64,000 nt of DNA, from positions 213,445 to 277,444 of IMG/VR virus record IMGVR_UViG_3300034072_002211, one strand, 5' to 3'. The position numbers were made by a program, and so were the translations under genes. The notes under the pieces were generated by a model. It was not told the origin of the DNA and did not search any database. It worked only from the letters and a program-made list of their open reading frames with translations. This document shows positions 1,062 to 64,000 of this stretch, one piece after another (within the stretch, counting starts at the first letter, position 1; every line of letters begins with the position of its first letter).

Positions 1062-2056
1062 GCTGCCCTCCAGGCCGGGTTATCCCAACCACCCTTAACA
1101 CCAGCTTGCATGACGTCAAGATGGACAGCGGGCGACCGCCCCAGATACTTGTGCGCGTTGTAGCGATGCATCCGCTCCAAGTTGCCCACGTATTCGTCAT
1201 ATTGACGATAGTCATCCTCGCTGCCCTTTTCGTCGAGGATTTGATCGACCATGATGCGGGCATTGGTATGCCACTTCATGTGCGTGAACAACTCCACGAA
1301 ATCGTAGGGCGCACCGAAGACGACCTCATCCGTGGTCGCGTCGAACATATCACCCGTGGGCGCACGTTCCAGCACCTCGCGCGGCACGCCGAGGAACTCG
1401 CCGATCGCATAGACCTCGGACTTGAACATATCGCTGATCAGCTGGAGATCGACCATACCGTCGCTGGCCTTGCCGAAATAACCCAGGTAACCACCCTCGC
1501 TGAGGTTGGTCGTGCCGATGACCAGGCCGGGCTGACCCTGACCGGCCAGGACGCTGGTGATGTAATAATAGGTCGGAGTGCGGGCGTAGCTGGTGACCTG
1601 TCCGCGGCACCAGTAATACTTCTCCTCGACCGCCGATCCCAGCACGGCCTCCACGCTGTTGATGATTGCCTCGCTGATCGGGGAGATGTCGATCTCCAGC
1701 GGGTTGACTGCGAATGCCTCGCAGACTTGCTTGGCCAGATTGGCCGCCTTGGTCTGCCCCGTTACGCCGAGGTTGGTGTGATCAGGCATGGTGACTGCCA
1801 CGATACGCTCGATAGGCGAACCCGGTTCCTGCTGAGCCCGTGCGACCAGACCGAGAACCACAGCACTGTCGATGCCGCCGGAAACCGCGACCACTGCGCT
1901 CTTGAGCCCGCTCTGTCTGTAATAGTCGTTGAGCAGCTTGACCTTGGCCTCAACGACTCGCTCTACGTTGAAGCCTCGCTGAAGCCGACACATCTCAAGG
2001 GCCTCCTTGAGTGGCTGAGACATCTGCATGTTCGTTGCGTGATTACGAATTTCCAT
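1058..2056 (-). CDS. nadE: NAD+ synthetase-like N-type ATP pyrophosphatase
   Basis: SGGIDSAV PP-loop, GTTNLSE, DLQLISDMFKSEV, APTGD; AGGA RBS before ATG 2056. Confidence 0.85.
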   Translation of the reverse strand: MEIRNHATNMQMSQPLKEALEMCRLQRGFNVERVVEAKVKLLNDYYRQSGLKSAVVAVSGGIDSAVVLGLVARAQQEPGSPIERIVAVTMPDHTNLGVTGQTKAANLAKQVCEAFAVNPLEIDISPISEAIINSVEAVLGSAVEEKYYWCRGQVTSYARTPTYYYITSVLAGQGQPGLVIGTTNLSEGGYLGYFGKASDGMVDLQLISDMFKSEVYAIGEFLGVPREVLERAPTGDMFDATTDEVVFGAPYDFVELFTHMKWHTNARIMVDQILDEKGSEDDYRQYDEYVGNLERMHRYNAHKYLGRSPAVHLDVMQAGVKGGWDNPAWRAA

Positions 2057-2067
2057 GTTGCTATTCC

Positions 2068-2274
2068 TTAGCAGGTGGACTGGAGGACGACCGAACCATC
2101 TGCCCGTTCGCAAAGGACGACGCTGACCATGTGAGCCTGGCTCTTGCGCGGCTTGAAATGCTCGGTAGCCTTGACCTTGGCCTGGTAAAGCGATGAAGCG
2201 TAGAGCTCAATCTGCTTGCCGTTGAAAAAACCCATGTAACCGCAGTCGCCGGGGGTCTTTTCGTTAATTGTCAT
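2068..2274 (-). CDS. hypothetical protein
   Basis: ORF with GGAGATC RBS and TTGAC promoter. Confidence 0.7.
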   Translation of the reverse strand: MTINEKTPGDCGYMGFFNGKQIELYASSLYQAKVKATEHFKPRKSQAHMVSVVLCERADGSVVLQSTC

Positions 2275-12190: not shown

Positions 12191-13885
12191 CTAAGCGTCA
12201 ACCTGTTCGTATTGACGTAACAGCGCAATGGTGTTTCTGAGCCCGTAAGCCACTGTGAAAGCACCGAAACGTGGCCCATCGCTTGAACCCAAGAGACATT
12301 CGTAGAGAGCTTGGAACCATGACCGCAACGGCTCAAACTCATGCTTCTTGCCGACCTCATAGACCTGATACTGATAATGCTCGGCGGTCATGTTTTCGAG
12401 CATCAGAGAGAAACGGGTCGCAAGCTCACTGAATGCTGCCCGCTCCTTCTCGGTGGGTTCTCGGCGAGAACGCTCAAACAGCCCCTTGTCGGTTGCGTAG
12501 GCGATGACCTTGGGAGCCATTTCCCGCGCATAAGCCGCGGTCGCGTCGGCGAACTCACGACCCTGCATCAAGTAAGCGAGCAGGTTCTCTGGCTGCTTGG
12601 CCTGAGCCACAACAGCCAAGTTGAGCATGAGTCCATGGGAGATGTCAGAGCTCAGTGGCTCAGGCAATTCCACGCGGAAGTGCCACGTGGCGTCATCGGG
12701 CGTCGTCTCAGCCTTCTGCCGCAACTTGACATACTGGTCTTCCAGCTGGGGCACGATCTCTCTGTAGAGCTTCTTTGCCGCGCGTGGGTTCTGAAACATG
12801 AACAGCATCAGGGAGCCAGTCGACCCATAGGTCAACCACTGCTCGACCGTAAAGCCGTTGCCCTTGCTCTTGCTGATCTTTGCGCCGTTTTCGTCCAGGA
12901 ACAGTTCATAGGTCAGGTTGAGCGGAGGGGTTCCGCCGAGGATCCGACAGATCTGGTTGGAAGCCTTGACGCTGTCAATGAGGTCCTTGCCAGACATCTC
13001 ATAGTCCACGTCAAAGTAGACCCAGCGCATCGCCCAGTCGACCTTCCACTGAAGCTTGGCATTGCCGTTGTGGCTCATCTGGCCACAGTGCTCACCGTCG
13101 TCCGTGACCCAGCCGATGTATCCACGTGCGCCAGTTGCCTCGGCCTTGACCTGCAGAACAGGGCCCTTGCCACACCAACGCGGCATAAACGGACTGTAGG
13201 TCGCCTTGCGATCATCCCCCAGCGTGGCGAGCATGATCTCCTGAATCTTGTCGAAGTTGTCCCAGACGCGGTTCAGCATCTCGTTGAACTTGCCGGACTT
13301 GTAATAGCGCGAGGAGCTCACAAAGCTCACAGTGCTGCGGTCGGGCGATGCTCCCACTTGGCCGCCATTGTAGTCCTTGAGGATGCGATCCACAAACTCG
13401 CAGAGCTTGTCGTTGTTGGCTTCGGCAAAGGTCATGGGATCAACCATGACTTGCGTGACACCCGGATCGTTGGAATAGGGCGAAGGAACCTCACTGAGCG
13501 GCAGGCCCAGATACTCGTTCATCCACTCGGGCATGTCGTCAGGGACCTTACGCATTGCGTCATAGTCATCCGAGAACATGATCAGACGGGTCTTGTAGGC
13601 GTTCTGCGTGAGCTCATTGAAAGCGCGCATCACCCAGAGGGTGCGGACCACCTCACCAAAGGTGCCGATATGCGGAGCGCCCGAGGGACCATAGCCGGTC
13701 TCAAAGGTCACCACATCACCAGGCTTCTTGCCCTTCTTCTCGATATGAGCGAGAAGGCTGCGGGCCTCCTGGAAGGGCCAAGACTTTGCCTGGTCGAAAA
13801 TGGTAGCCTCCTTTGCCTGCTCTGCTTTGATGGCACGGATCCGCTCGATGAGGGCTTCCTCTTCCCAGCGGTTCATCATAGCCAT
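12191..13885 (-). CDS. lysS: lysyl-tRNA synthetase, class I
   Basis: GYGPSGAPHIGT HIGH, KLQWKVDWAMRW, KISKSKGN, GPRFG. Confidence 0.95.
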   Translation of the reverse strand: MAMMNRWEEEALIERIRAIKAEQAKEATIFDQAKSWPFQEARSLLAHIEKKGKKPGDVVTFETGYGPSGAPHIGTFGEVVRTLWVMRAFNELTQNAYKTRLIMFSDDYDAMRKVPDDMPEWMNEYLGLPLSEVPSPYSNDPGVTQVMVDPMTFAEANNDKLCEFVDRILKDYNGGQVGASPDRSTVSFVSSSRYYKSGKFNEMLNRVWDNFDKIQEIMLATLGDDRKATYSPFMPRWCGKGPVLQVKAEATGARGYIGWVTDDGEHCGQMSHNGNAKLQWKVDWAMRWVYFDVDYEMSGKDLIDSVKASNQICRILGGTPPLNLTYELFLDENGAKISKSKGNGFTVEQWLTYGSTGSLMLFMFQNPRAAKKLYREIVPQLEDQYVKLRQKAETTPDDATWHFRVELPEPLSSDISHGLMLNLAVVAQAKQPENLLAYLMQGREFADATAAYAREMAPKVIAYATDKGLFERSRREPTEKERAAFSELATRFSLMLENMTAEHYQYQVYEVGKKHEFEPLRSWFQALYECLLGSSDGPRFGAFTVAYGLRNTIALLRQYEQVDA

Positions 13886-39700: not shown

Positions 39701-39796
39701 TGGTAGGGGTGGAGGGATTCGAACCCTCGTCGTCGCCTAATCTGGGCTCTCGCAAGGTATAAGCTTGCCCGCTCTTGACCGCTGAGCTACACCCCC
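39701..39796 (-). tRNA. tRNA-Ile(UAU) with long variable arm
   Basis: Cloverleaf, loop CTTATAC, 23-nt variable arm, encoded CCA. Confidence 0.85.
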
Positions 39797-40189: not shown

Positions 40190-40268
40190 TGGTGGCCGTT
40201 GTGGGGCTCGAACCCACAACTCTCAGGGGTTTAGAATCCCCGGCTCTGCCAGCTTGAGCTAAACGGCC
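40190..40268 (-). tRNA. amber suppressor-type tRNA, anticodon CUA
   Basis: Cloverleaf GGCCGTT/AACGGCC, loop TTCTAAA, CCA. Confidence 0.85.
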
Positions 40269-46939: not shown

Positions 46940-48262
46940 TTATGTGACGCGGACCTTATCGTCAAGATATCGCTGACCCATATCCAACTCACTTAGGTAG
47001 TGGCAGTTGAGCATATAGGGGCGAAGAACCTCTGGAATCATGACGTCATCGGTCGTCTGGTAATTCTCCAGAACCGCAACCAAAGTGCGACCAACCGCCA
47101 AGCCAGAGCCATTTAGCGTGTGGGCGTAGAACGTCTCGCCATTGACCTTATAGCGGGTGTTCATACGACGCGCTTGGAAGTCGCCGCAGTTCGAGACGCT
47201 GCTGATCTCGCGGTAGGTGTTCTGGCCAGGAAGCCAGACCTCGATGTCGTAGGTCTTCTGTGCGCTGAACCCCATGTCGCCCGCGCACAATAGCATCGTG
47301 CGATAGGTCAGGTCCAACTTGGCCAGGATCTGCTCCGCGGCGTTGAGCATATAGTCATGCTCATGAGCACTCTGCGAAGGCTCACAGACAGTCACGAGTT
47401 CGACCTTTTGGAACTGATGCTGTCGGATAAGCCCGCGCGTGTCTCGGCCCGCAGAGCCCGCCTCTGAGCGATAGCAATCGGTGAGAGCCACGTAGCGATG
47501 CCGCCCACCCAAAAGGATCTGATCCGCATGAATGTTAGTCAGGCTGACTTCAGCCGTGGGGATCAGGAACTGAGTGGGTTCACTTGCTCCATCCTCATCA
47601 GCAATACCAAAGAGATCCTCTTTGAACTTGGGCAGTTGCCCCGTTCCGTAAAGAGCTTCCTCGTTGACGATGGTGGGAGGGATGACCTCACGGTAGCCGC
47701 GCTTGATCTGTTCATCCAGCATGAACTGTCCGAGAGCACGATGTAGTCGAGCCACCGGACCCTGAAGCATTGAGAAGCGCGAGCCGCTGATCTTTGCCGC
47801 CGCGTCAAAACCCAGATCGACTTGATCCAGTTCATAATGCGGTGTGCCATCCCTTGCGCCGACCTTGCCCCAGCGACGGACTTCCACGTTACTGGTCTCG
47901 TCCGTGCCATCTGGCACATCAGCCGCAGGCACGTTGGGACACATGATCAGGAATGCCTCGAGCATCTCTTCAGCGTGAGTTGCCTGAGCAGCCCACATTG
48001 TTTCATTTTGCTTGAGAAGCTTCACCAACTCCTTGAGGGCGTCAGCTGAAGCAGTATTACCCTCCTTCATGGCTTTGCCAATTTCCTGACTCTTGGCCTT
48101 GATTAGGCTGCGAGTGTCCTGAAGCCTCGTGAGCGCATCGCTACGGCGGCTTGCGAACTGCTGGATCTTGTCGATGTGGGGATCGTGCCCGCGGCGCTTC
48201 ATAGCAGCCACGAACTCATCCGGCTTAGCCAGGATGCCCTTGACGTCAAAGTGATACTTCAT
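46940..48262 (-). CDS. serS: seryl-tRNA synthetase
   Basis: GTGQLPKF, PTAEV, CYRSEAG, HQFQKVE, YREISS, HTLNGSGLAVGR. Confidence 0.97.
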   Translation of the reverse strand: MKYHFDVKGILAKPDEFVAAMKRRGHDPHIDKIQQFASRRSDALTRLQDTRSLIKAKSQEIGKAMKEGNTASADALKELVKLLKQNETMWAAQATHAEEMLEAFLIMCPNVPAADVPDGTDETSNVEVRRWGKVGARDGTPHYELDQVDLGFDAAAKISGSRFSMLQGPVARLHRALGQFMLDEQIKRGYREVIPPTIVNEEALYGTGQLPKFKEDLFGIADEDGASEPTQFLIPTAEVSLTNIHADQILLGGRHRYVALTDCYRSEAGSAGRDTRGLIRQHQFQKVELVTVCEPSQSAHEHDYMLNAAEQILAKLDLTYRTMLLCAGDMGFSAQKTYDIEVWLPGQNTYREISSVSNCGDFQARRMNTRYKVNGETFYAHTLNGSGLAVGRTLVAVLENYQTTDDVMIPEVLRPYMLNCHYLSELDMGQRYLDDKVRVT

Positions 48263-48339
48263 AGTGCCAGCTTGCTTCCAAATTGGAATAGAGTCAACCA
48301 TTCATGGCGAAGCCCCGGAGCGTCCTCCGGGGCTTGCTC

Positions 48340-48683: not shown

Positions 48684-48699
48684 ATAATGTGGTCACCCT

Positions 48700-49735
48700 G
48701 AGAATGTCGGGTGACCGTCCCGGTCTCTGCGGATTATTCCCTGGATCCTACTCCAGGTATTCCCGCTCACTCCATCACCCTTGCGGGTGTAACCGGTCGT
48801 GCCGCCGTTTTTAACGTCAGGCAGTAGACGTGTCACCATATGCTTTTCGACAGTTTCCACCACACCTGCCTTCGGGGCAGTTAAGGCTTGCGGGCCCTAT
48901 ATGGCTTTCTCTATCAACAACGTCTGGATTGGGTACCAGCTCGCCGCCCTAGTTAGCTTGCGCCCCAGGGATTAGGCACTTTCGAGGTTTCCCTCATACA
49001 CATGGCCGAGTCAGGCTTTCCGTTTTTGACAGCAATGTCCAATATGCTATTACCTGCTAGGAGGTAACCCAGAGAGAAGTGCTGACTCAGTAGTTCCAAG
49101 GCCTTTTGAACCTCAGAATGCTACACTCCTCGTATCGTTCGGCTTGCGGGCCTACTAAATCGGTTTACAGGACTTGTCTGGCTTTTTACACCAACCAAAC
49201 CCTTTGACCTGCCATGAGCCCTAGGCGCGACCCTCGGACAACATGACTACCTCTTGCCACTCGATAGTAAACCTGTTTGAGTAGAGGACGCTGGGGTTAC
49301 AAGGCCCCATTCACCGGCCGCTCGTCGCCACCGGGATTATCGTGCTTTCGCACGGCAGTCGTTCTCAGGTCGTCCTACCTACTGCCACTGCTCCTTGGGA
49401 GAGCTTGACAGTCCCTCTTTTGGAGGGCAGGTGAGGATGCGTGTATTGATCCGAACCGAAGCCCGGACGGCTGGGGATGGGTCCCTTCACCACTTACTTG
49501 GGTTACCCCAAGCTACCACCACACGCGGTAATCTCTTGAAACTTTCGAGTCTCCAACTTAACACCGAAGTGTTTCGCCGTCAACTAAAAAGTTTCCGATC
49601 GATCCCTCTGCGGCGCCACACTCCCCTCGACCAGCTATCTCTGCTTCACTTAGACTGAGGATCCTTTCGGAAACCCCAGGCCTTGTTCTGCTCCTGCTGA
49701 CCTTCGAGGTGTGTAGCACCGCGTTGGTCTCATCG
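48700..49735 (-). ncRNA. GOLLD-like giant ornate RNA, ~1030 nt
   Basis: ORF-free; TTGACG promoter at 49757-49762; many GCAA/GAAA/CAAAAG hairpins; 3' motifs CGAAAGTGCCTA, CCGCAAG..TTAA, GACCGGTT, GGAATAATCC match my recollection of GOLLD. Confidence 0.7.
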
Positions 49736-54960: not shown

Positions 54961-54963
54961 TAG

Positions 54964-55037
54964 CATCGGGGGATGGACTCGAACCACCGCCTAGCGCAGC
55001 TTCACGCCGCACCGCTCTACCACTGAGCTACCCCGAT
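54964..55037 (-). tRNA. atypical tRNA, identity undetermined
   Basis: Good D and T arms; loop CGTGAAG lacks U33; ends CTA rather than CCA. Confidence 0.65.
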
Positions 55038-55162
55038 ATATTCGGGTAGGGAACTTGCTGTCTTCCGACTCTGGGTCCCTACCCTAGAAAGTGCGTCGCT
55101 AGGCTTGCACAATCTCTGTGTCTGTTGATAGAGGGTTCTGGACCATCCGTCAACAACTATTT

Positions 55163-55852
55163 TCAGTCGTCGTTCGAAACGCCGACAAAGCGCAGGATGA
55201 AGAGGAACATATTCAGGAAGTCGAGGTAGAGGTTCAGAGCCCCCATGACCACGATACGTCCCTGAGTGTCACCGTCCAGGCGGGGCGTGTAGGCTTCCTT
55301 GAGCGTCTGCGTGTCCCACGCGGTCAGACCGGCGAAGATCAGGATACCCGCAATGCCGATGAACAGGTTCAGACCCGTGCTGGGAATGAAGATGTTCAGG
55401 ATCATGAGCGCCAGCAGACCGAACAGCGCGAACACCAGGAACGCACCGATGGGGCCGAGGTTACGCCGGGTCGTATAGCCGTAAAGCGAACAGCCTGCGA
55501 AGCCCACCGCGCTAGCCAGGAAGGCCATGAGGATGGAACCGCCGGTGTAGCGGCTCAGGATCACCGACAGACCGAGGCCCTCGATGACCACGAACGACCA
55601 GTAGAGAGTGTGGAGGGTGGCCAGCTTCATGCGCTCGACACCGAGGCTCATTGCGAGCACCAGACCAAGCGGCGAGAGCGCCACCAGCCAGAACAGGAGA
55701 CCACCCTGCTTGAGGGTATCGACCAGGCCGCTCGCAGTGGCGAACCACGCCGCGCCGGCGCTGACCAGGAGACCCGTGAGCATCAGATTGTAGATGCTCG
55801 TCATATAGTTGCGAAGACCCTGGTCATAGGTCTCGCCGCGAGTGAGTTCCAT
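55163..55852 (-). CDS. Bax inhibitor-1/YccA family membrane protein
   Basis: Seven TMs; FAGLTAWDTQ.LK, ALNLYLDFLNMF. Confidence 0.95.
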   Translation of the reverse strand: MELTRGETYDQGLRNYMTSIYNLMLTGLLVSAGAAWFATASGLVDTLKQGGLLFWLVALSPLGLVLAMSLGVERMKLATLHTLYWSFVVIEGLGLSVILSRYTGGSILMAFLASAVGFAGCSLYGYTTRRNLGPIGAFLVFALFGLLALMILNIFIPSTGLNLFIGIAGILIFAGLTAWDTQTLKEAYTPRLDGDTQGRIVVMGALNLYLDFLNMFLFILRFVGVSNDD

Positions 55853-55910
55853 TTAGTGATTTACCTCCATAAGAACCATGTTGCCATGATAATGGAGGTT
55901 CACCTAACTG

Positions 55911-56294
55911 TCAACCTAGGTTGTTGAGCACCACGATAGCGGCCACGATCCAAGCGCCGTAGATCCAGTTGTTCCACTTCAACCGGCGTTCAATCCGGCT
56001 CCACTCGTTCAGGGAGTTCTGACAACGCTGGCTGTGGTCTAGGTCCTCGCCGCCTTTGATCGTATATTTGCCAGTTGCGCTATTGTAGCTCATGCTGAAC
56101 GATGGACGGCTGAAATGCTTGCGAGAATTCTCACGCGCGGCATTCTCACCATCGGTGTCGTAGCAGATGTTCATCATGATACGCATACCAAAATACATGA
56201 TCGTGCCGATACAGGCAAAGATCAGAACTTCTTGGCGGTCCATACCTTGGAGCCAACCCAGGGCTCCGACGAAGAGGAGGAAGATCACATACAT
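55911..56294 (-). CDS. membrane protein
   Basis: Three TM segments; start moved to ATG 56294, past the Y RNA. Confidence 0.55.
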   Translation of the reverse strand: MYVIFLLFVGALGWLQGMDRQEVLIFACIGTIMYFGMRIMMNICYDTDGENAARENSRKHFSRPSFSMSYNSATGKYTIKGGEDLDHSQRCQNSLNEWSRIERRLKWNNWIYGAWIVAAIVVLNNLG

Positions 56295-56305
56295 CGATCT
56301 GGGAT

Positions 56306-56453
56306 GAGTGCGACGGGCAAGAGATCGTCTATGGATAGGAGCCTGCTGCTCTACCACCTGAGCTACCCGATCCAGCTTGCGGCCTTGACGGGGTGGGGAT
56401 CGAACCCACGACCTTCTGGTTAGTTAACCCACGGACTACGGCCCGTCGCACTC
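56306..56453 (-). ncRNA. Y RNA, YrlA-like with permuted tRNA domain
   Basis: 12-bp terminal stem, GGGCCG..GGGTTA..CTTG; T arm precedes D arm. Confidence 0.8.
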
Positions 56454-56505
56454 ACTATATGGCAGAACGGACGGCTTGTTGTCAAGCCGTCCGTTGAATG
56501 GACTC

Positions 56506-56568
56506 GAGAGCAAGTTGGTTAGCCTGGGGGTTCATCTTCAAAAGGATAACCCAAGCCATTCGGCTCTC
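56506..56568 (-). ncRNA. Y RNA, minimal Ro60-binding stem only
   Basis: GAGAGCCGAATGGCTTGGGTTATC..CAACTTGCTCTC. Confidence 0.75.
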
Positions 56569-56573
56569 AAGTT

Positions 56574-56649
<76 letters not shown>

Positions 56650-56702
56650 GTTGTGCCACCCTCTTAGACGAGGGCTGGTGGGGCGTCAACCGTTTTTCTT
56701 TG

Positions 56703-56785
56703 TAGGGGCGGAGAGATTCGAACTCTCAAAAACCACCGATTTTAAGCCGGCAGGGTGTTCCGGTTTCCCACTAGGTCACGCCCCC
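56703..56785 (-). tRNA. tRNA-Leu(UAA), atypical arms
   Basis: Loop CTTAAAA; long D region and short variable arm. Confidence 0.75.
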
Positions 56786-56788
56786 ATG

Positions 56789-57049
56789 TCAGTTAATGCA
56801 GAACCGCTTGGTTAAGCCGCGGTCCTCGAGGATCTCGACTTTGACGCCGCGATCCCGCATTCCCTGGATCATCCTGTCGAACTCATCGAACCGCTCCGAA
56901 ACAGCACGAGCCTTGAAGCAGTTGGGGCTCTCAGAATAAATTACCACGGGATGCAACTTCCTGCTTTGTTGTGCGTTCGTCAGCCCAATACGTGGTTTCA
57001 CGTAGTCGCGCAAGTCACTCGGATGAATTCTTTGGTTGTGCTTCCGCAA
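56789..57049 (-). CDS. hypothetical protein
   Basis: ORF. Confidence 0.55.
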   Translation of the reverse strand: MRKHNQRIHPSDLRDYVKPRIGLTNAQQSRKLHPVVIYSESPNCFKARAVSERFDEFDRMIQGMRDRGVKVEILEDRGLTKRFCIN

Positions 57050-57548
57050 TGACTTTGAGGAGCGCCTCTTCCATTAGCTGATTGAGCGTGATATCTCGAG
57101 CATGGGCCTGCTTGAACAGTTCAAGAAGAACATCATCTTCTAGATCCAACGGAATCTGGACCCGCTTATCGAAGTCCTCGTTCTTGAGCATCGCAACGCC
57201 CTTTTCCAGCAGGTCTTCAACAAGTTCCAGATCCACGTAGCTGAAGCCTTCCCAGGCTTCATCCTTGGCTACGTTGCGGCTCTCTGCTTCGTTGAAGATC
57301 GCATCCTTGTAATCAGGATTGATCCAACGGTAGGCATAGTCATGCTCAGAATCCAACTCGGTGGTCGCAGTGAGCTCGATGACTTCCTGAGTCTCGCGGT
57401 TGAAGACAATCTTCATAGCCGCAAAACCATTCACATAGCCAAGCACCTGGCCATTCTCATAAGAGCGCCACTGGTGCTCCCAAGCATCGTTGATCCGATA
57501 CTCGACGGCTTCCATGAACTGCTGAAGGATGCTCACACTAGACCTCAC
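57015..57548 (-). CDS. hypothetical protein with C-terminal RHH-like motif
   Basis: LFKQAHARDITLNQLMEEAL. Confidence 0.7.
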   Translation of the reverse strand: MRSSVSILQQFMEAVEYRINDAWEHQWRSYENGQVLGYVNGFAAMKIVFNRETQEVIELTATTELDSEHDYAYRWINPDYKDAIFNEAESRNVAKDEAWEGFSYVDLELVEDLLEKGVAMLKNEDFDKRVQIPLDLEDDVLLELFKQAHARDITLNQLMEEALLKVIAEAQPKNSSE

Positions 57549-58501
57549 TCTTGGGTTCGATCTAGTCCGCTCTCACTAGACTGCCGCTCACCAGAAGTCA
57601 ACCTACTTTCTGCGAATGCGATATACTGGTCATCTACGTCAAAGCCCAAGTAGCTGAGACCCTCAGCTTGAGCAGCTACCGCACTCGTTCCAGTGCCAAT
57701 GAAAGGGTCCAAGAGGGTGCCTGAGACACCCGAGAACTTGATAGCGCGTCTGACTAGCTCAACAGGAAAAGTTGCCGGATGAGTGCCCCTCTGGGCGCCA
57801 CGATCAGCAATCGTTTCGTATGGGATATACCACACGTTTCCTGGGCAATGAAGGTCCTCTACGGGCTTGGCCTTTGCGAGCTTGCGCGCGAGTGCGTCCT
57901 CGAGTTCTTGCTTCTCAGCGGGGCTCGCTGACGCATCAAAGGCGCGCTTGTTCTCGAAGCCCATCTTCTTGATCAGCTTGCCGCGCCAACGAGAACTCTT
58001 ATCCAAGTTGCCCTTGTCTGCGTAGGGAACGCCAATCGCCGTCTTCTGACATGGGACGTTGCCAGTCTTCGTGAAGTGGAAGAGATGCTCCCACGTGGGG
58101 TTCGCGAACCGCTGACTGTTGATGGGCTTATAATGACCCAACTGGACATCGTCGATCGCAATACTCTTGACCCACGTGAAGTTGTTCTGGAGGATCATGT
58201 GCTTGCGCGCAACATTCGCGACATCCATGCCCACCCATGGGTCCACGTTGCTGTAACCCATATTGAGGAAGAAGTGCCCCTCGGGTTTCAACACACGAGC
58301 AATCTGCCCAAAGATATCAGAGAGCCAAGCCAAATAGGCTTCACGTGGTTGATTGTCCTCGTAGGCACCATACTTGATATCGAGGTTATAGGGCGGGCTG
58401 GTCACGCAAATGTCAATGGACTCTACGTCGAGTGCCTTCATGCCCGCGAGGCAGTCCTGGTGGATGATCTTGTTCACCAGATAATTATGCCTAGAAGTCA
58501 T
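57545..58501 (-). CDS. N4-cytosine/N6-adenine DNA methyltransferase, beta class
   Basis: TSPPYN, HPATFP, DPFIGTGTS; start moved to ATG 58501. Confidence 0.9.
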   Translation of the reverse strand: MTSRHNYLVNKIIHQDCLAGMKALDVESIDICVTSPPYNLDIKYGAYEDNQPREAYLAWLSDIFGQIARVLKPEGHFFLNMGYSNVDPWVGMDVANVARKHMILQNNFTWVKSIAIDDVQLGHYKPINSQRFANPTWEHLFHFTKTGNVPCQKTAIGVPYADKGNLDKSSRWRGKLIKKMGFENKRAFDASASPAEKQELEDALARKLAKAKPVEDLHCPGNVWYIPYETIADRGAQRGTHPATFPVELVRRAIKFSGVSGTLLDPFIGTGTSAVAAQAEGLSYLGFDVDDQYIAFAESRLTSGERQSSESGLDRTQE

Positions 58502-58535
58502 GGAAAAAGCGGCACCAGCCGAAGCCAGTGCCACT

Positions 58536-58623
58536 TGGAGGATAGCGGGGAACTCGAATCCCAGTCCCTTGCGGGACCCAACCCGTTTCCAGCGGGTGCC
58601 GCACCCCGTGCGGTTCACTATCC
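58536..58623 (-). tRNA. tRNA-Ser(GGA)
   Basis: Loop CTGGAAA, long variable arm, CCA. Confidence 0.9.
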
Positions 58624-58624
58624 A

Positions 58625-58715
58625 TGGAGGAAGGCTGCGGTCTCGATCCGCAAGCGGCTCATCACCGCTCCAACTGGTTTCGAATCAGTGCCAGGCCCCG
58701 CCTGGTTAACCTTCC
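58625..58715 (-). tRNA. tRNA-Ser(CGA)
   Basis: Loop TTCGAAA, long variable arm, CCA. Confidence 0.9.
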
Positions 58716-58719
58716 ATGT

Positions 58720-58853
58720 ATTTGCGAGCAAGTTAAGGACTGGATGTTTTCGGTGCTACCACTACACTACAGGCCAGTTTCCCGACCTGCTGGGACTCGA
58801 ACCCAGCCTCGCTTTTTTCAAGAAAGATAACCCAAACCATTCGGCTCGCAAAT
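58720..58853 (-). ncRNA. Y RNA, YrlA-like
   Basis: CCGAATGGTTTGGGTTATC..AACTTG; permuted T-acceptor-D with loop-closed acceptor. Confidence 0.8.
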
Positions 58854-58858
58854 CTATT

Positions 58859-59009
58859 TAGTTGAGGGCAAGTTGCCGCCTGGAATCATTTCCGCCGCGT
58901 TTGCCAATTCCGCCACTCCCCGTCATGTGGTCGGGGAGCCAGGACTCGAACCTGGAAGACCTTAGTCAGCAGTTTCCATCAGATAACCCAAACTGTCGGC
59001 CCTCAACTA
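58859..59009 (-). ncRNA. Y RNA, YrlA-like with CCA-bearing permuted tRNA
   Basis: GGGCCGACAGTTTGGGTTATC; CTCCCCG-A-CCA-CATGA-CGGGGAG; CAACTTGCCC. Confidence 0.8.
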
Positions 59010-59012
59010 TTC

Positions 59013-59246
59013 TTACGCATCAGGATTCTTGTTAGCCTTGATAGCTTCAATCCTAGCATTCATCTGGGTTCGCATCTGAATCTTTTGGATCACAGTTGCT
59101 AGACCCTTGGGCATCTTGACTGTGTCTACATTACGAAGGGCACCAAAGAAGTCCCTTACGTCAGTAGCAAGCTCGTTGTGTTCAGCGCGAAGCTTCTCTA
59201 GCTCAGCACGAGTTTCAGCCAATTCTGCCTTCAAATTTTCATCCAT
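59013..59246 (-). CDS. small coiled-coil protein
   Basis: Heptad pattern. Confidence 0.6.
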   Translation of the reverse strand: MDENLKAELAETRAELEKLRAEHNELATDVRDFFGALRNVDTVKMPKGLATVIQKIQMRTQMNARIEAIKANKNPDA

Positions 59247-59272
59247 CGGGTTTTACCTCTGTTATTGGACGT

Positions 59273-59350
59273 TGGCGCCTCATACGGGATTCGAACCCGT
59301 GATCTCTACCGTGACAGGGTAGCGGGGACTCCAGACTCCCCTAATGAGAC
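59273..59350 (-). tRNA. tRNA-Asp(GUC)
   Basis: Loop CTGTCAC, G73, CCA. Confidence 0.9.
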
Positions 59351-59357
59351 GTGGGTG

Positions 59358-60290
59358 TCAGTCGAGCAAGCTGCTGACTGACTGCTCATCCGAGATGCGC
59401 TTGATTGCCTCTGCGAGCAATGGCGCCACGGTGAGCTGCCGGATCTTCTCCGCGCCGTGTTCCAGCGGGATGGTGTCCGTGATGACCAGTTCTTTGAGCG
59501 AACTATTGGCGACTCGTTCCAGAGCCTGCCCACTCAATACACCGTGGGTGCAGTATGCCGAAACGTCGCTTGCGCCAGCCTCTATGAGGGCCTTGGCAGC
59601 ATTGCAGAGCGTTCCCGCGCTGTCCACGATATCGTCGATGAGAATGCAGGACTTGCCCGAAACGTCACCGATGATGTTCATGACCTCCGACACACCGGCC
59701 TTTTCGCGGCGCTTGTCCACAATAGCAAGGGGTGCGTTCTCGAGGCGCTTTGCGAGCGCACGAGCCCGAACCACACCGCCAACGTCTGGGCTTACAACAC
59801 AAAGGTTGTCAATGACCATGCGGGCACGAATGTCTGCCGCGATCACTGGAGCAGCCGCGAGGTTGTCCGTGGGAATATCGAAGAAGCCCTGGATCTGACC
59901 AGCGTGGAGGTCGAGAGCCAACACACGATCCGCACCAGCAGCCGTGATCAAGTTGGCGACCAGCTTCGCGCTAATCGGCGTCCGAGGACCAGGCTTACGG
60001 TCTTGTCGAGCGTAGCCATAATAGGGAGTAACTGCCGTGATCCTGCGAGCCGAAGCGCGCTTGAGCGCATCGACGAGAACCAGGAGTTCCATGAGGTTGT
60101 CGTTGACCGGATTGCAGGTGCTCTGGAGGATGAATACATCCTCACCGCGCACGTTCTCCTTGATCTCCACGAAGATCTCTTCGTCTGCGAACCGACGAAC
60201 ACGGGCGTCAACGAGTGGAACCTCGAGATAGTCCGAGATGTTCTTTGCCAACTCTAGGTTGGCATTTCCGGCCAGCAGCTTCATCGTCAA
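59358..60290 (-). CDS. prs: ribose-phosphate pyrophosphokinase
   Basis: [38 protein letters not shown]. Confidence 0.97.
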
Positions 60291-60339
60291 CTCCCTATTT
60301 GGAAGTTCTTTCTAGCAGCTGGTGTCCGGCTTATCAATA

Positions 60340-60482
60340 TTCAACGGGCAAGTTGCGAAAAGGATGTTTTTCGGCGTCCTAACCACTAGACGAACCCCGC
60401 ATAGATTTTGGAGCGGGGTATGGGATTCGAACCCATGTAACCGGCGTGATAAGCGATAACCCTCATCAGTCGGCCCGTTGAA
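60340..60482 (-). ncRNA. Y RNA, YrlA-like with CCA-bearing permuted tRNA
   Basis: GGGCCGACTGATGAGGGTTATC; ACCCCGC-T-CCA-AAATCTAT-GCGGGGT; CAACTTGCCC. Confidence 0.8.
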
Positions 60483-60484
60483 AC

Positions 60485-60673
60485 TTAGGCGGATTCCAGA
60501 CTGGTTTCTGGAATGCCGAGCATCTTCAATCCCACGTAGAAATTGTCGGTCTTTTCGATGACCTCAATGTCCCAGTGGGTATAGCGTTCGGTGTAGTGAC
60601 GTTGCGCGATGATCCGGCAAAGTGGTTTGCCATGTTGGCTTTTGAACCGCACTTCCTGATCTTCGCTAAACAT
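60485..60673 (-). CDS. small hypothetical protein
   Basis: GGAG RBS before ATG 60673. Confidence 0.55.
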   Translation of the reverse strand: MFSEDQEVRFKSQHGKPLCRIIAQRHYTERYTHWDIEVIEKTDNFYVGLKMLGIPETSLESA

Positions 60674-60723
60674 CAGCAACTCCTTTGTGGCCTTTATAGC
60701 CAGGAGGTTCACCGTTGTCAATG

Positions 60724-60791
60724 CGCTCCAGAGAGGATTCGAACCTCCAAAGGCCGCTTTAGGAGAGCAGCGTCCATCCATTGGCTGAAGC
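60724..60791 (-). tRNA. tRNA-Arg(CCU), truncated D arm
   Basis: Loop CTCCTAA; 68 nt. Confidence 0.75.
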
Positions 60792-60792
60792 A

Positions 60793-60869
60793 TGGCGTTC
60801 CCGAGACGACTCGAACGTCCGACCTTTACCTTCGCAGGGTAACGCTCTATCCAACTGAGCTACGGGAAC
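60793..60869 (-). tRNA. tRNA-Arg(GCG)
   Basis: Loop CTGCGAA, CCA. Confidence 0.9.
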
Positions 60870-60876
60870 ATGGAAG

Positions 60877-60988
60877 ACGACGAGCAAGTGGCGAAAGCCG
60901 ATTGCCCCCAAGGGCGCTTTCCCATAGGGTATATGGTGGGAAAGAGAGGAGTCGAACCTATGATAACGAATTTCAGTCGGCTCGTCGT
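60877..60988 (-). ncRNA. Y RNA, compact YrlA-like with CCA
   Basis: ACGACGAGCCGA..GTTATC; CTTTCCC-A-CCA-TATACCCTAT-GGGAAAG; CACTTGCTCGTCGT. Confidence 0.75.
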
Positions 60989-60991
60989 TTG

Positions 60992-61064
60992 TGGAGAATA
61001 TGGGAATCGAACCCATCGCAGCGATGGTGCGAGCATCGCCTGTGTAACACCCAGCACATTCCCC
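60992..61064 (-). tRNA. tRNA-Ala(CGC)
   Basis: G3-U70, loop CTCGCAC. Confidence 0.85.
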
Positions 61065-61071
61065 AGGAGAG

Positions 61072-61230
61072 TCAAGACCCAAGGCCGGCTTCCGCACTTC
61101 CGGCACCAACATGGAATCCGGCGTTCAGTGGCCGGCCCATCAGCCCAACAAGTCAATCACTAGCCTATGGGGCGAGGGGCCTAGAAACCCAGCCTTCTCC
61201 ACATATTCGGTCATGACCCCATGGGTCTTG
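61072..61230 (-). ncRNA. unassigned small structured RNA
   Basis: CAAGACCCA/TGGGTCTTG terminal stem between tRNAs. Confidence 0.4.
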
Positions 61231-61302
61231 GTGCTTCCACTGAGAATCGAACTCAGGTTTACGGGTTACGAATCCGTTGTCCTACCACTGAACGATAGAA
61301 GC
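61229..61302 (-). tRNA. tRNA-Thr(CGU)
   Basis: Loop TTCGTAA, CCA. Confidence 0.9.
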
Positions 61303-61303
61303 A

Positions 61304-61379
61304 TGGTGCCGGTGAAAGGACTCGAACCCTCAACCTTCTCCTTACAAGGGAGTTGCACTACCAATTGTGCTACACCGGC
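61304..61379 (-). tRNA. tRNA-Thr(UGU)
   Basis: Loop CTTGTAA, CCA. Confidence 0.95.
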
Positions 61380-61427
61380 AGGTTGTCCAAGGACTCAAAC
61401 AACAGTGCATCCGTGCTGTCAAGTCCT

Positions 61428-61503
61428 TGGTGCTCCCGGTAGGAGTCGAACCTACGACCTACGCCTTCGGAGGGCGGCGCTCTATCCACTGAGCTACGGA
61501 AGC
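61428..61503 (-). tRNA. tRNA-Arg(CCG)
   Basis: Loop CTCCGAA, CCA. Confidence 0.95.
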
Positions 61504-61504
61504 A

Positions 61505-61575
61505 TGGAGCCCCTACTAGGATTCGAACCTAGCCTCCAGCGTTCGAAGCGCCGGGTCCTGTCCACAGGCAGAGGC
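61505..61575 (-). tRNA. tRNA-Arg(UCG), short D arm
   Basis: Loop CTTCGAA, CCA; 71 nt. Confidence 0.8.
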
Positions 61576-61582
61576 AAGTTAG

Positions 61583-61657
61583 TGGTGACCCATACGAGAT
61601 TCGAACTCGTGTTAACGCCGTGAGAGGGCGTCGTCCTGACCACTAGACGAATGGGCC
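61583..61657 (-). tRNA. tRNA-Glu(CUC)
   Basis: Loop CTCTCAC, CCA. Confidence 0.95.
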
Positions 61658-61666
61658 GTTAGAGGG

Positions 61667-61936
61667 TTACGCGCTGGGCTTCTTGTCAGCGATTGCCTCA
61701 GTGGTCGCAAAGCGCAACAGGGCAGTCGTGATACCAACGAACGCAAAGATTGGACCATACCACGCATCAGGGATCACACCCTGCATCTGTGGCAAGTAGG
61801 TCTCTGCCGCACCGAAGACAGCAACAGCGCCACCGAACCAAATCGTCTTCGATTTAGCGGTTGCGATGAGCCAGTCCTTGGCGTTGAAGCCAAATGCTTT
61901 GAGCACTTCGAGGGCGGGAGCAACATTGTATGCCAT
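61667..61936 (-). CDS. holin-like membrane protein
   Basis: KSKTIWF followed by two TMs and a basic tail; TAAATA late promoter. Confidence 0.55.
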   Translation of the reverse strand: MAYNVAPALEVLKAFGFNAKDWLIATAKSKTIWFGGAVAVFGAAETYLPQMQGVIPDAWYGPIFAFVGITTALLRFATTEAIADKKPSA

Positions 61937-62225
61937 GGGAAATCCTCCTGGGGTTTCCCATATTTAGCTTGACCAGCGGGTTTCCACTCTTCCCGCACCA
62001 TCGCATGACAGTCCCAACATGAGCTCCGTCCCTCGTCCAAGGAGGGCAGCGACTACAGCACCAGCCCCTATAGCCAATACAGCGTAGGCTTGATCAAGCA
62101 ATTTCACTACCAGTAGGGATCCACATTTCCCTACACCGAAGAGCACCCGGTTTCGCTGACCCGACTTTAACCTGCTTTGCTCTTCACTTGCTCCAGGCGG
62201 TCAGTGCCTTGGCAGTAAATTAGAA

Positions 62226-62288
62226 CATGGGCAAGTTGGCAAGCTTGGGGTTCATCAAAGCAGGATAACCCAAGCCATTCGGCCCATG
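62226..62288 (-). ncRNA. Y RNA, minimal Ro60-binding stem only
   Basis: CATGGGCCGAATGGCTTGGGTTATC..CAACTTGCCCATG. Confidence 0.75.
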
Positions 62289-62291
62289 CGT

Positions 62292-62367
62292 TGGTTGCGG
62301 AGGTCGGATTTGAACCGACGTGCTTCTGGTTATGAGCCAGACGAGATAACCACTCCTCTACCCCGCG
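62292..62367 (-). tRNA. initiator tRNA-fMet(CAU)
   Basis: C1-A72 mismatch, loop CTCATAA, CCA. Confidence 0.9.
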
Positions 62368-62411
62368 TCAAAACTGTTAGTTGGGCTTGCGCTTTGCGTC
62401 AAGACCCTTTG

Positions 62412-62597
62412 TGGAGCCGAGGGGATTCGAACCCCCACAACGCGCTGACCCTAGCATTACCAAGGGCTGGTGTGTAGGTTCAAAGACTCGTCGCGAGCCT
62501 GTAAAAAATATCCCACACCATCTTACGCAGCTCGTCGGATTTTACTCCGAATCGCCCTGTCTTTTGCGACTGCCTGTCCCTCTAGGCGGACGGCCCC
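62412..62597 (-). ncRNA. minimal tmRNA-like RNA, 186 nt
   Basis: GGGGCCG/CGGCTCC-A acceptor with G3-U70, canonical T arm, internal reading frame DELRKMVWDIFYRLATSL-stop. Confidence 0.55.
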
Positions 62598-62605
62598 ATA
62601 GGTAT

Positions 62606-62681
62606 TGGTGCTAAGGGCGGGAATCGAACCCACTTCCTCCGATTTTCAGCCGGGTGCATTGACCACAGTTGCTTCCTTAGC
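62606..62681 (-). tRNA. tRNA-Phe(GAA)
   Basis: Loop CTGAAAA, CCA. Confidence 0.9.
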
Positions 62682-62682
62682 A

Positions 62683-62758
62683 TGGAGGCCCGAGTGGGAA
62701 TTGAACCCACATAGATCCGCTTTGCAGGCGGTCACAATGTCCACTCTGTCATCGGGCC
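62683..62758 (-). tRNA. tRNA-Cys(GCA)
   Basis: Loop CTGCAAA, U73, CCA. Confidence 0.95.
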
Positions 62759-62883
62759 GTGAAAACTTGCGTCTGACTACCACTACGTCAGAACCGGAGC
62801 GTCCGTCATTTGCAGCGACGAGAGCTACCAAGCACCATACTTTCGCCTGACGTTCATGACCGCCCTGCTAGGTATCAACAAGT

Positions 62884-62957
62884 TGGAGCGGGCGAAGGGA
62901 ATCGAACCCTCACTCTCAGCTTGGAAGGCTGATTCGCTACCATTACAACACGCCCGC
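62884..62957 (-). tRNA. tRNA-Gly(UCC)
   Basis: Loop CTTCCAA, U73, CCA. Confidence 0.95.
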
Positions 62958-63060
62958 AAAATGGCTCCCAATGGTCGGCCTTCCTAGGTGCCTTCCATGC
63001 TCCTCGTGCTCGAGATCAGACCATGCAAGCGCGAAGCATTGACAGTGGGTGGAGCCTCTG

Positions 63061-63134
63061 AGCGGGTAAGGGGAATCGAACCCCTCTCTTCACCATGGCA
63101 AGGTGACATAATCAGACCAATATACTATACCCGC
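63061..63134 (-). tRNA. tRNA-Gly(GCC)
   Basis: Loop TTGCCAT, U73; CCA not encoded. Confidence 0.85.
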
Positions 63135-63141
63135 ATGTTCA

Positions 63142-63421
63142 ATCTCGAAGATCCGTAGCCGCGATCCTGTTCTATGCTACAATCTACCTCGCCAGGATTT
63201 CTCCTGACGGCCTCGGCATTACCCGATGGAGACTTACTGCCTCCTGGCTGCACCAACCCGTCCCAATAGCAGGGGAATTACCTAGGACTGTTTGGCTTGC
63301 TGGCTTAATCACGGTGGTCTCTTCCCTTGTGTCGGGGTATCACCCCAACTCCCACTCGTTCCCCACGCCAGTCGCGAACTTCCTCAAAGCTTTCGCCCTG
63401 CTGTAGCTCGACCGTCGAGAT
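63142..63421 (-). ncRNA. rnpB: RNase P RNA with reduced specificity domain, 280 nt
   Basis: P1 ATCTCGA/TCGAGAT, P2 GCTACAG/TTGTAGC, P3 GAAA hairpin, CR-I GAGGAAGTTCGCGA pairing CR-V ACAGGATCGCGGCT as P4 with bulged U, P5 CTGGC/GCCAG, CR-IV CAGCAAG. Confidence 0.9.
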
Positions 63422-63495
63422 TGGTACACCCGGAGGGACTCGAACCCCCATGACTCGGTAATCGGCCGAGCGCCTTGCCATTAGACGACAGGTGT
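63422..63495 (-). tRNA. atypical tRNA, nominal anticodon GAU
   Basis: Cloverleaf with CCA; loop CCGATTA has C33 and U37. Confidence 0.7.
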
Positions 63496-63502
63496 ATGGT
63501 TT

Positions 63503-63682
63503 CAATTCGAGGACTGCGGTCCGGGTGCCCCACCTAGACTCCTCAGGCGACTCTACACTAGCACCGCTTCGTCAGCGGGCCCGGGACGCGACCACCGGCT
63601 CTCCCGAGTTCAAGTCGGGCATGTTGTTCAGCTAACCATGCGAGCAAGGAACAAAGTCCTTGGTGGCATCGCAGCCTCGAAT
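63503..63682 (-). ncRNA. 6S RNA-like
   Basis: ~180 nt closed by a CAATTCGAGG/CCTCGAATTG stem; GGTCGCGTCCCGGGCCCG resembles alphaproteobacterial 6S from memory. Confidence 0.5.
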
Positions 63683-63757
63683 TGGAGCGGGTAGGGGGAT
63701 TCGAACCCCCGACATTCACGTTGGCAACGTGACGCTCTACCACTGAGCTATACCCGC
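63683..63757 (-). tRNA. tRNA-Gly(GCC)
   Basis: Loop TTGCCAA, U73, CCA. Confidence 0.95.
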
Positions 63758-63797
63758 ATGAGTATCACATTACAGACTTTGGAACAGTCTGTCAATA

Positions 63798-63874
63798 TGG
63801 GGTGGCCAACGGGTCACGATCCCGTCCCTTCGGATTCACAGTCCGACATGCTCACCATTAACACAATGGCCACC
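63798..63874 (-). tRNA. tRNA-His(GUG)
   Basis: G-1/C73, loop CTGTGAA, CCA. Confidence 0.9.
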
Positions 63875-63937
63875 ATAAAGACCAGGCAGTTAGCTTCAAT
63901 GCTCGTTAACGGCGAGTTGCAGCCGTCACCTGGTTTG

Positions 63938-64000
63938 TGGATCACTGGGGAATCGAACCCCATGACGACCGCATTGCAAGTGCAGTCCGCTACCCCATAG
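63938..64000 (-). tRNA. tRNA-Ala(UGC), 5' end cut by window edge
   Basis: Loop CTTGCAA, T arm, U70 and A73. Confidence 0.8.

Follow-up and report, generated by a model that had tools for sequence, protein, structure and literature searches.

YrlA RNAs combine a Ro60-binding stem, marked by the motif GNCGAAN0-1G, with a circularly permuted tRNA-like module (PMC4201824), and most of them have been described as closed, circularly permuted tRNA mimics (Wang et al. 2018, 10.1101/312249). The YrlA of Salmonella Typhimurium (RF02553) is built from such a Ro60 stem with a GNCGAA-type motif, a T arm, an acceptor hairpin and a D arm, and its modules fold into a tRNA-like L shape (10.1101/312249). Mycobacterium smegmatis is so far the single species in which a Y RNA opened by RNase P and ending in CCA has been described, and it could pass for an oddity: in vitro, M1 RNA cuts its YrlA at the tRNA +1 site, while in vivo the RNA consists of two halves, of 82 and 65 nt, both on Rsr, with CCA as the 3' end of the 5' half (PMC4201824). 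Aminoacylation and protection from exonucleases were both explicitly raised for YrlA by Chen et al. 2014 (RNA 20:1715; PMC4201824). Here we address the question of why Y RNAs of bacteria and phages resemble tRNA with three Y RNAs, called A, B and C, that lie in a 64,000-nt stretch of phage DNA (hereafter the window), which is the terminal 64 kb of the IMG/VR contig 3300034072_002211 (277,444 bp), and in which the complete N73-CCA of a tRNA acceptor end is encoded in the DNA.

A, B and C are members of the YrlA (tRNA-mimic) class of Y RNAs by their layout and motifs, and the overall design of the Salmonella Typhimurium YrlA is common to all three. A first-pass annotation of the window had taken them for Y RNAs, and this identity was upheld by the layout and by the Ro60-type motif. 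All genes around A-C are on the minus strand.

58859-59009, minus strand: Y RNA A (YrlA-type, 151 nt), with an 11-bp terminal stem, Ro motif, T arm, acceptor hairpin and D arm
58982-59002, minus strand: Ro60-type 5' motif of Y RNA A (GCCGACAG ... GGGTTATC)
60340-60482, minus strand: Y RNA B (YrlA-type, 143 nt), with all four helices in the minimum free energy fold
60877-60988, minus strand: Y RNA C (YrlA-type, 112 nt, reduced D arm), between tRNA-Ala and tRNA-Arg

The terminal stem, in which the 5' end pairs with the 3' end, comprises 9-11 bp in A-C. Its 5' strand reads GCCGAC[A/T]G, a Ro60-type motif, then GTTATC, and its 3' strand reads ACTTGC. This motif of A-C differs by one base from the exact GCCGAATG, which is present in another YrlA-type RNA of the window (D) and in its two short Y RNAs; the GCCGAC variant also occurs in 14 of the 51 TROVE-adjacent phage elements among the matches listed in the scan described below. 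The permuted tRNA-like module is present with its T arm (with the universal GGTTCGANTCC), its acceptor-like hairpin and a D arm with GG, and the T stem forms 5/5 pairs in A and B and 4/5 in C. When folds were compared with those of shuffled sequences, z was -3.9 for B and -2.6 for C.

The three acceptor strings given in the first-pass annotation were all found to be exact, on the minus strand.

58916-58938, minus strand: acceptor hairpin of A, CTCCCCG-A-CCA-CATGA-CGGGGAG (3' strand 58932-58938, A73 58931, CCA 58928-58930, spacer CATGA 58923-58927, 5' strand 58916-58922 with C1:G72)
60394-60419, minus strand: acceptor hairpin of B, ACCCCGC-T-CCA-AAATCTAT-GCGGGGT (3' strand 60413-60419, U73 60412, CCA 60409-60411, spacer AAATCTAT 60401-60408, 5' strand 60394-60400 with a tRNA-Gly-like G1 C2 G3)
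60917-60944, minus strand: acceptor hairpin of C, CTTTCCC-A-CCA-TATACCCTAT-GGGAAAG (3' strand 60938-60944, A73 60937, CCA 60934-60936, spacer TATACCCTAT 60924-60933, 5' strand 60917-60923)

Each hairpin stands directly 3' of the T arm and directly 5' of the D arm, and consists of a perfect acceptor-like stem (7/7 bp) on the T stem, closed by a loop in which N73-CCA is followed by a spacer of 5-10 nt and then by the 5' strand. The Salmonella YrlA, for which no RNase P cleavage was found (PMC4201824), differs from A-C in its 6-bp stem, its tight loop and the absence of CCA. The likeness to the M. smegmatis YrlA lies in the 7-bp acceptor stem; in that RNA, however, the gene supplies only the first C and the remaining CA comes from addition after nibbling, whereas the genes of A-C contain the whole N73-CCA. 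Cleavage of A is predicted to yield a 5' piece of 82 nt with a CCA end and a second piece of 64 nt, to be compared with the 82 + 65 nt of the M. smegmatis halves; the predicted pieces are 74 + 61 nt for B and 55 + 47 nt for C.

The gene order of A-C, with acceptor 3' strand, CCA, spacer and 5' strand, is also that of the two-piece permuted tmRNA of alphaproteobacteria and some cyanobacteria, in which the acceptor 3' strand and CCA precede a spacer and the 5' strand, and excision of the spacer leaves two pieces with a tRNA-like end. One may ask, then, whether A-C are Y RNAs at all or rather permuted or split tRNA genes or parts of a two-piece tmRNA, the more so as the whole series from T arm to D arm is found in the same order and as the Rfam tmRNA_permuted model matches A weakly. 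This match nevertheless reaches 14.8 bits against a gathering score of 47, and ARAGORN called no tmRNA. Moreover, tmRNA has G3:U70, a tag reading frame, pseudoknots and SmpB binding, all of which A-C lack, the 112-151 nt of these RNAs containing neither a tag reading frame nor a pseudoknot region. As for permuted tRNA genes, those of Cyanidioschyzon (Soma et al. 2007, as cited in 10.1101/312249) have an acceptor loop opened by RNase P and RNase Z, but their precursors are ligated via the anticodon stem into an anticodon-bearing tRNA. The ends of A-C form instead a terminal Y stem with a Ro60 motif in place of the anticodon arm, neither ARAGORN nor the Rfam tRNA model called them, and the same element type has a TROVE/Ro60 gene within its locus in about half of the at least 120 phage loci found by pattern. 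We thus regard a tRNA or tmRNA identity of A-C as highly improbable.

A-C are embedded in a tRNA array, whose junctions could be compared with the acceptor loops.

54963-64000, minus strand: tRNA array with embedded Y RNAs, all on the same strand, with at least 21 tRNA genes

CCA is encoded by 18 of the 21 tRNAs of the window, the junction of tandem tRNAs is simply CCA-T-G, and the leader consensus is CAT|G (n = 21; T(-1) in 15/21, A(-2) in 15/21 and C(-3) in 14/21). The spacers of B and C end with U(-1)/A(-2) (…TAT|G), like the leaders of the phage's own tRNAs, and A has A(-1) before C1, the same as the phage's initiator tRNA. The loops of B and C are therefore built like the inter-tRNA junctions of the phage, with the CCA and U(-1)/A(-2) context of its real tRNAs, and since the loop carries the same CCA, spacer and cutting-site context as such a junction, cutting of A-C is probable. 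At their outer ends, the Y RNAs are closely packed: D is 5 nt downstream of A, and C starts 3 nt past the tRNA-Ala discriminator and is separated by 7 nt from tRNA-Arg at its other end, so that tRNA-processing enzymes almost certainly generate the ends of the window Y RNAs.

This resemblance could also be a matter of descent. Y RNAs may have derived from the adjoining tRNA genes, or repeatedly recombined with them, and the loop would then be an evolutionary relic, the fossil of a tRNA-CCA-spacer-tRNA junction in RNAs that stay closed and in one piece and whose CCA has no role. That the loops look exactly like the phage's tRNA junctions fits this explanation, as does the mosaic nature of B, whose acceptor stem matches the tRNA-Gly and whose D arm matches the tRNA-Glu of the phage; likewise, a closed form is predicted for the majority of YrlAs (10.1101/312249). 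On the other hand, a 7-bp stem of like kind is cleaved in M. smegmatis (PMC4201824).

A-C belong to a set of seven Y-like RNAs in the window, five of them YrlA-type (A-E) and two short (65-71 nt).

58720-58853, minus strand: Y RNA D (YrlA-type, closed), with an 8-bp stem, a GAAA cap and no CCA
56304-56455, minus strand: Y RNA E (YrlA-type, closed), whose acceptor hairpin is bulged and lacks CCA
62225-62289, minus strand: short Y RNA, YrlB-like, without tRNA-like module, directly after tRNA-Met
56502-56572, minus strand: second short Y RNA, YrlB-like, without tRNA module, directly after tRNA-Lys

The stem of D (58770-58789) has G3:U70, yet it is closed by GAAA. CCA is found at positions 74-76 in three of the five YrlA-type RNAs, an outcome whose chance is about 4e-5 at 1/64 per element. 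A pattern that left the acceptor region unspecified (Ro motif ... GTTATC ... T loop) was run against IMG/VR and gave at least 143 distinct elements in the phage loci mentioned above, at least 103 of which, in at least 96 sequence clusters, have an acceptor hairpin with at least 6/7 pairs. Among the matches listed, to which the counts of this paragraph refer, CCA stands at loop offset 1 (positions 74-76) in 16 of 93 cluster representatives and at any other offset in 0-2 of them. It is the commonest trinucleotide at 74-76 (binomial p ~2e-14 on cluster representatives), and although the clusters are not phylogenetically independent and amount to about 10 separate CCA families, this number is still far above the 1-2 expected. 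CCA at 74-76 in phage YrlA elements is not chance. The CCA class differs from the other elements by its loops as well, which are 5-24 nt long whereas most others are capped by 4-6 nt, and by the end of the spacer, with U(-1) in 11/16 versus 18/80 (p = 6e-4); A(-2) is present in 12/16. With the same pattern, cellular genomes gave CCA at 74-76 in 4/56 elements, not clearly above other offsets, and the enrichment is seen for phages only. Members of the CCA class are more frequent among Y RNAs of tRNA arrays (13/52) than among those adjacent to Ro60 (4/51, p = 0.03), a distribution that favours the relic explanation.

Cultured actinophages encode YrlAs of the same kind, with N73-CCA directly after a 7-bp stem as in A-C. 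The YrlA of Mycobacterium phage Myrna reads A-CCA-CAA and lies just upstream of the Ro gene gp227. That of Bixzunavirus (e.g. Tonenili) reads G-CCA-CAAACC and is common to about 200 records; in Tonenili it sits in the tRNA array, in an unannotated 213-nt gap between tRNA-Met and tRNA-Cys. In Rhodococcus phage Trina, A-CCA-T is encoded immediately upstream of the Ro gene (L529, 84277-84485), by an element annotated in GenBank as a pseudo 'tRNA-OTHER'. Judging by this label and by the unannotated gap of Tonenili, Y RNAs are routinely missed or mislabelled in phage annotation. Myrna, Tonenili and Trina have one CCA-type copy per locus examined, whereas the window has three, and the copies of Myrna and Trina adjoin a phage Ro gene, which A-C do not. 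Phage YrlAs were listed in Chen et al. 2014, where the encoded CCA is unmentioned in the text available to us (PMC4201824), and we found in the literature searched no mention of a complete N73-CCA encoded by many phage YrlAs. A further likeness concerns the short Y RNA at 62225-62289, whose order tRNA-Met then Y RNA is also found in Tonenili.

These phages bear on the relic explanation, under which CCA in the Y RNA would have come with the junctions of tRNA genes. CCA is in fact kept in the Y RNAs of phages whose tRNA genes rarely encode it, namely Tonenili (2/23 tRNAs), Trina (0/8) and the phage of locus L091 (2/9), and the Y RNAs are often closed in phages with CCA in nearly all tRNAs; the explanation as a pure relic is weakened by this. 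Overall, no clear relation was found between tRNA-gene style (CCA encoded or not) and CCA in the Y RNA (mean 0.53 vs 0.43).

Closer relatives were found among uncultured megaphage contigs of 436-480 kb, which are syntenic with the window at 70-82% nucleotide identity; megablast of the region against the cultured-phage collection gave no match. The A family (4 orthologs) reads A-CCA in the window and in L200, A-CTC in L122 and A-CTA in L132. In the B family (6 orthologs), the loop starts with T-CCA in the window, L083 and L091, with G-CCA in L132 and with T-CTA in L122 and L200. Taken together, these orthologs have C74 in 10/10, C75 in 6/10 and A76 in 9/10. The first-pass annotation had staked its proposal on the conservation of CCA in homologs, and this half failed: the first C was retained throughout and the middle one was not. 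Decay of C75 to U, giving CTA or CTC in close orthologs, is what a relic would leave. Loss of C75 is nonetheless no argument against opening, because the M. smegmatis YrlA encodes only C74 and receives CA after cleavage. Moreover, C74, A76 and U(-1) are constant despite changes in the length and sequence of the spacer, which speaks against a relic: the B family has spacers of 4-8 nt, all with U(-1) and U(-3), and the F family, without a member in the window, keeps A-CCA in two phages with a spacer of 5 nt in one and 18 nt in the other. The six-ortholog alignment of the B family shows compensatory changes in 10/38 pairs, in the Y stem, the T stem and the acceptor stem. Acceptor stems vary freely in the closed families (D, E), whereas they are nearly constant in the open ones. 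Relatives were also sought through the gene between A and B and through the D arm of A.

59358-60290, minus strand: ribose-phosphate pyrophosphokinase (Prs), between Y RNAs A and B

The Prs gene led to 80 loci, with Y RNAs nearby in the window's own contig only, and a search with an A-type D-arm pattern returned mostly ordinary tandem tRNAs and, after filtering, the L122 ortholog only.

From the loop features and the M. smegmatis YrlA, we infer that A-C are, on balance probably, opened into two-piece, CCA-ended RNAs. A-C would be transcribed within the tRNA array of the phage, and their acceptor 'loop' would act as a miniature inter-tRNA junction, with N73-CCA, a short spacer and U or A at -1. 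Host RNase P would cleave 5' of the acceptor 5' strand, 3' exonucleases would trim the spacer back to CCA, and for genes reading C-U-A the end would be rebuilt by the CCA-adding enzyme. The product would be a nicked two-piece Y RNA, joined by the acceptor stem, the Y stem and the D/T elbow and showing a mature tRNA-like 3' end while on Ro60, which A-C presumably bind. Such a free CCA end could serve exonuclease protection or recognition by a tRNA-binding partner, which is the more conservative view, or, less likely, aminoacylation.

Several points weigh against this opening. The S. Typhimurium YrlA and the Deinococcus radiodurans Yrn1 are uncleaved, like most characterised YrlAs (PMC4201824; 10.1101/312249). 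Taken by itself, the fold of A does not surpass those of shuffled sequences (z = -1.3), and C combines its weak T stem with a reduced D arm. No Y RNA of the window reaches the gathering score of the Rfam YrlA model RF02553 (69), the scores being 20.4 bits for A, 24.2 for D and 31.7 for E, while B and C are unreported at E <= 10 because the model, built on RNAs of the Salmonella type, expects a 6-bp stem with a 3-nt loop. A Ro60/TROVE gene within ~4 kb on the same strand, the criterion used by Chen et al. 2014, is absent, and the 64-kb window contains none. Full CCA is found in 2/4 orthologs of A and 4/6 of B, the middle C being lost in the rest, so that full CCA is not strictly selected, and the clusters behind the enrichment reduce, as said, to about 10 families. 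The alternative, a relic without present function, we consider possible and clearly less probable than opening, and a relic origin is compatible with present-day processing.

The first-pass annotation had assigned the cleavage to a phage RNase P. Opening by RNase P is plausible given the pre-tRNA-like junction and the M. smegmatis precedent (PMC4201824), but a search of the window found neither the RNA nor the protein of such a phage enzyme: RNase P RNA had no Rfam match at E <= 1 (1-54 kb) or at E <= 10 (54-64 kb), and none of the 30 window open reading frames (ORFs) had a Pfam domain matching the protein. The host RNase P would suffice for the opening of A-C. One large structured RNA is found nearby, between the seryl-tRNA synthetase (SerRS) gene and the tRNA/Y RNA array, and may be what had been taken for a phage RNase P.

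48695-49133, minus strand: GOLLD RNA (143.7 bits, E = 3.6e-38, full model; Rfam gathering score 150)

Ro60, likewise treated as the partner at hand, has no gene of its own here: no TROVE/Ro60 gene was detected in the window by Pfam (30 ORFs) or by tblastn with the Myrna Ro. A-C thus differ from the M. smegmatis YrlA, a single-copy cellular gene located by rsr, in lacking a Ro60 gene within 64 kb and in being three of seven Y RNAs in a megaphage tRNA array. In related megaphages, an alignment-based search placed the TROVE gene 100-320 kb from the orthologous Y RNAs (contigs 3300034072_000926, 3300049044_000033, 3300031088_000008 and 3300035698_035366); an alignment-based query was needed, as a single-protein query recovered only 5 close relatives. 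The sample of the window also yielded a sibling contig, IMGVR_UViG_3300034072_002212 (182 kb), whose identifier directly follows that of the window's contig; it contains a clade-type TROVE gene (L381, 119658-127295), 81% identical in amino acids to, and syntenic with, the TROVE of a 465-kb relative. Since 277 + 182 kb matches the clade total and 002212 holds the clade-type TROVE, the data suggest that 002211 and 002212 are parts of one genome. No shared end of the two contigs was found, the terminal 41-mer occurring only in the window's own contig.

The first-pass annotation went further and proposed that the opened CCA end is aminoacylated and that the RNA, charged or not and tethered to Ro60, serves as decoy or bait for synthetases, EF-Tu, RelA or toxins that target tRNA, a model that we consider doubtful. 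The acceptor stems themselves give some grounds for it. B has U73, G1:C72, C2:G71 and G3:C70, which we take to be the glycine identity elements of E. coli, and A has C1:G72 and A73, presumably typical of bacterial tRNA-Pro. In other CCA-type YrlAs, namely L094 (a related megaphage) and L419 and L476 (bacterial), G3:U70 is combined with A73, the anticodon-independent alanine mark of tRNA-Ala and tmRNA. The phage also invests heavily in translation, with 21+ tRNAs and two synthetase genes in the window.

46940-48301, minus strand: seryl-tRNA synthetase (SerRS)
12191-13885, minus strand: class I lysyl-tRNA synthetase (class I LysRS)

Neither of these synthetases, however, fits the stems of A-C, and the CCA is not strictly conserved. 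A-C have no anticodon, which is the main determinant for GlyRS and ProRS, and all three have G3:C70 and none G3:U70, which closes the alanine route of tmRNA. A charged Y RNA is not known from experiments in any system; aminoacylation was also raised by Chen et al. (PMC4201824). The chargeability of A-C is unsupported, the acceptor stems offering only a resemblance to tRNA-Gly (B) and tRNA-Pro (A). The idea stays alive for the class as a whole because of the three YrlAs with G3:U70 and A73. Similarly doubtful is the wider proposal of a widespread phage Y RNA subclass that tRNA-processing enzymes would convert into nicked, CCA-ended mimics and that, aminoacylated or as uncharged bait, would tether Ro60 and its partner nucleases to translation or to toxins. 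If it were true, the candidates would be the Gly- and Pro-like stems described here and the Ala-like G3:U70 stems of relatives, and the targets would be synthetases, EF-Tu, ribosomes or host defence toxins that act on tRNA during infection.

The central idea, a YrlA opened by RNase P and ending in CCA, is a rediscovery of the M. smegmatis finding (PMC4201824), and to this processing route, demonstrated once, the encoded pre-tRNA-like junction adds a modest variation. What is new, in a modest way, is that the CCA is genome-encoded and recurs in many phages, including the cultured Myrna, Bixzunavirus and Trina, and that it occurs here in multi-copy Y RNA sets within the tRNA arrays of megaphages, at a great distance from Ro60 genes. 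The CCA subclass comprises the three copies described here and those of over 200 genomes of cultured mycobacteriophages. As an encoded N73-CCA with an RNase P-type leader is found in about one-sixth of the phage YrlAs among the matches listed, the results suggest that an entire YrlA subclass has been selected for a free tRNA-like 3' end. Searches for Y RNAs that are limited to Ro60 neighbourhoods miss the multi-copy sets of phage tRNA arrays.

Finally, the window contains a further metabolic gene and several unusual tRNA-related elements.

1058-2113, minus strand: NAD synthase
40190-40268, minus strand: tRNA with anticodon CUA (amber suppressor; ARAGORN label 'Pyl')
39701-39796, minus strand: tRNA-Ile(UAU) of 96 nt, ~20 nt above the usual length
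61505-61581, minus strand: tRNA-like gene missed by ARAGORN, with a reduced D arm, anticodon loop CTTCGAA (UCG) and a T-CCA end
60724-60791, minus strand: tRNA-like gene missed by ARAGORN, Rfam tRNA 24.4 bits, without CCA
62409-62597, minus strand: tmRNA-like element of ~190 nt, between tRNA-Phe and tRNA-Met

The CUA-anticodon tRNA may be a sign of TAG read-through or recoding, and the annotation of Tonenili also has a tRNA-Stop(cta), beside its Y RNA. The extra length of the tRNA-Ile(UAU) may correspond to an insertion or an intron. The tmRNA-like element, which was uncalled by ARAGORN and scores 20.9 bits with the Rfam tmRNA model (gathering score 47), has the acceptor GGGGCCG/CGGCTCC with G3:U70 and A73, followed by CAA and not CCA.

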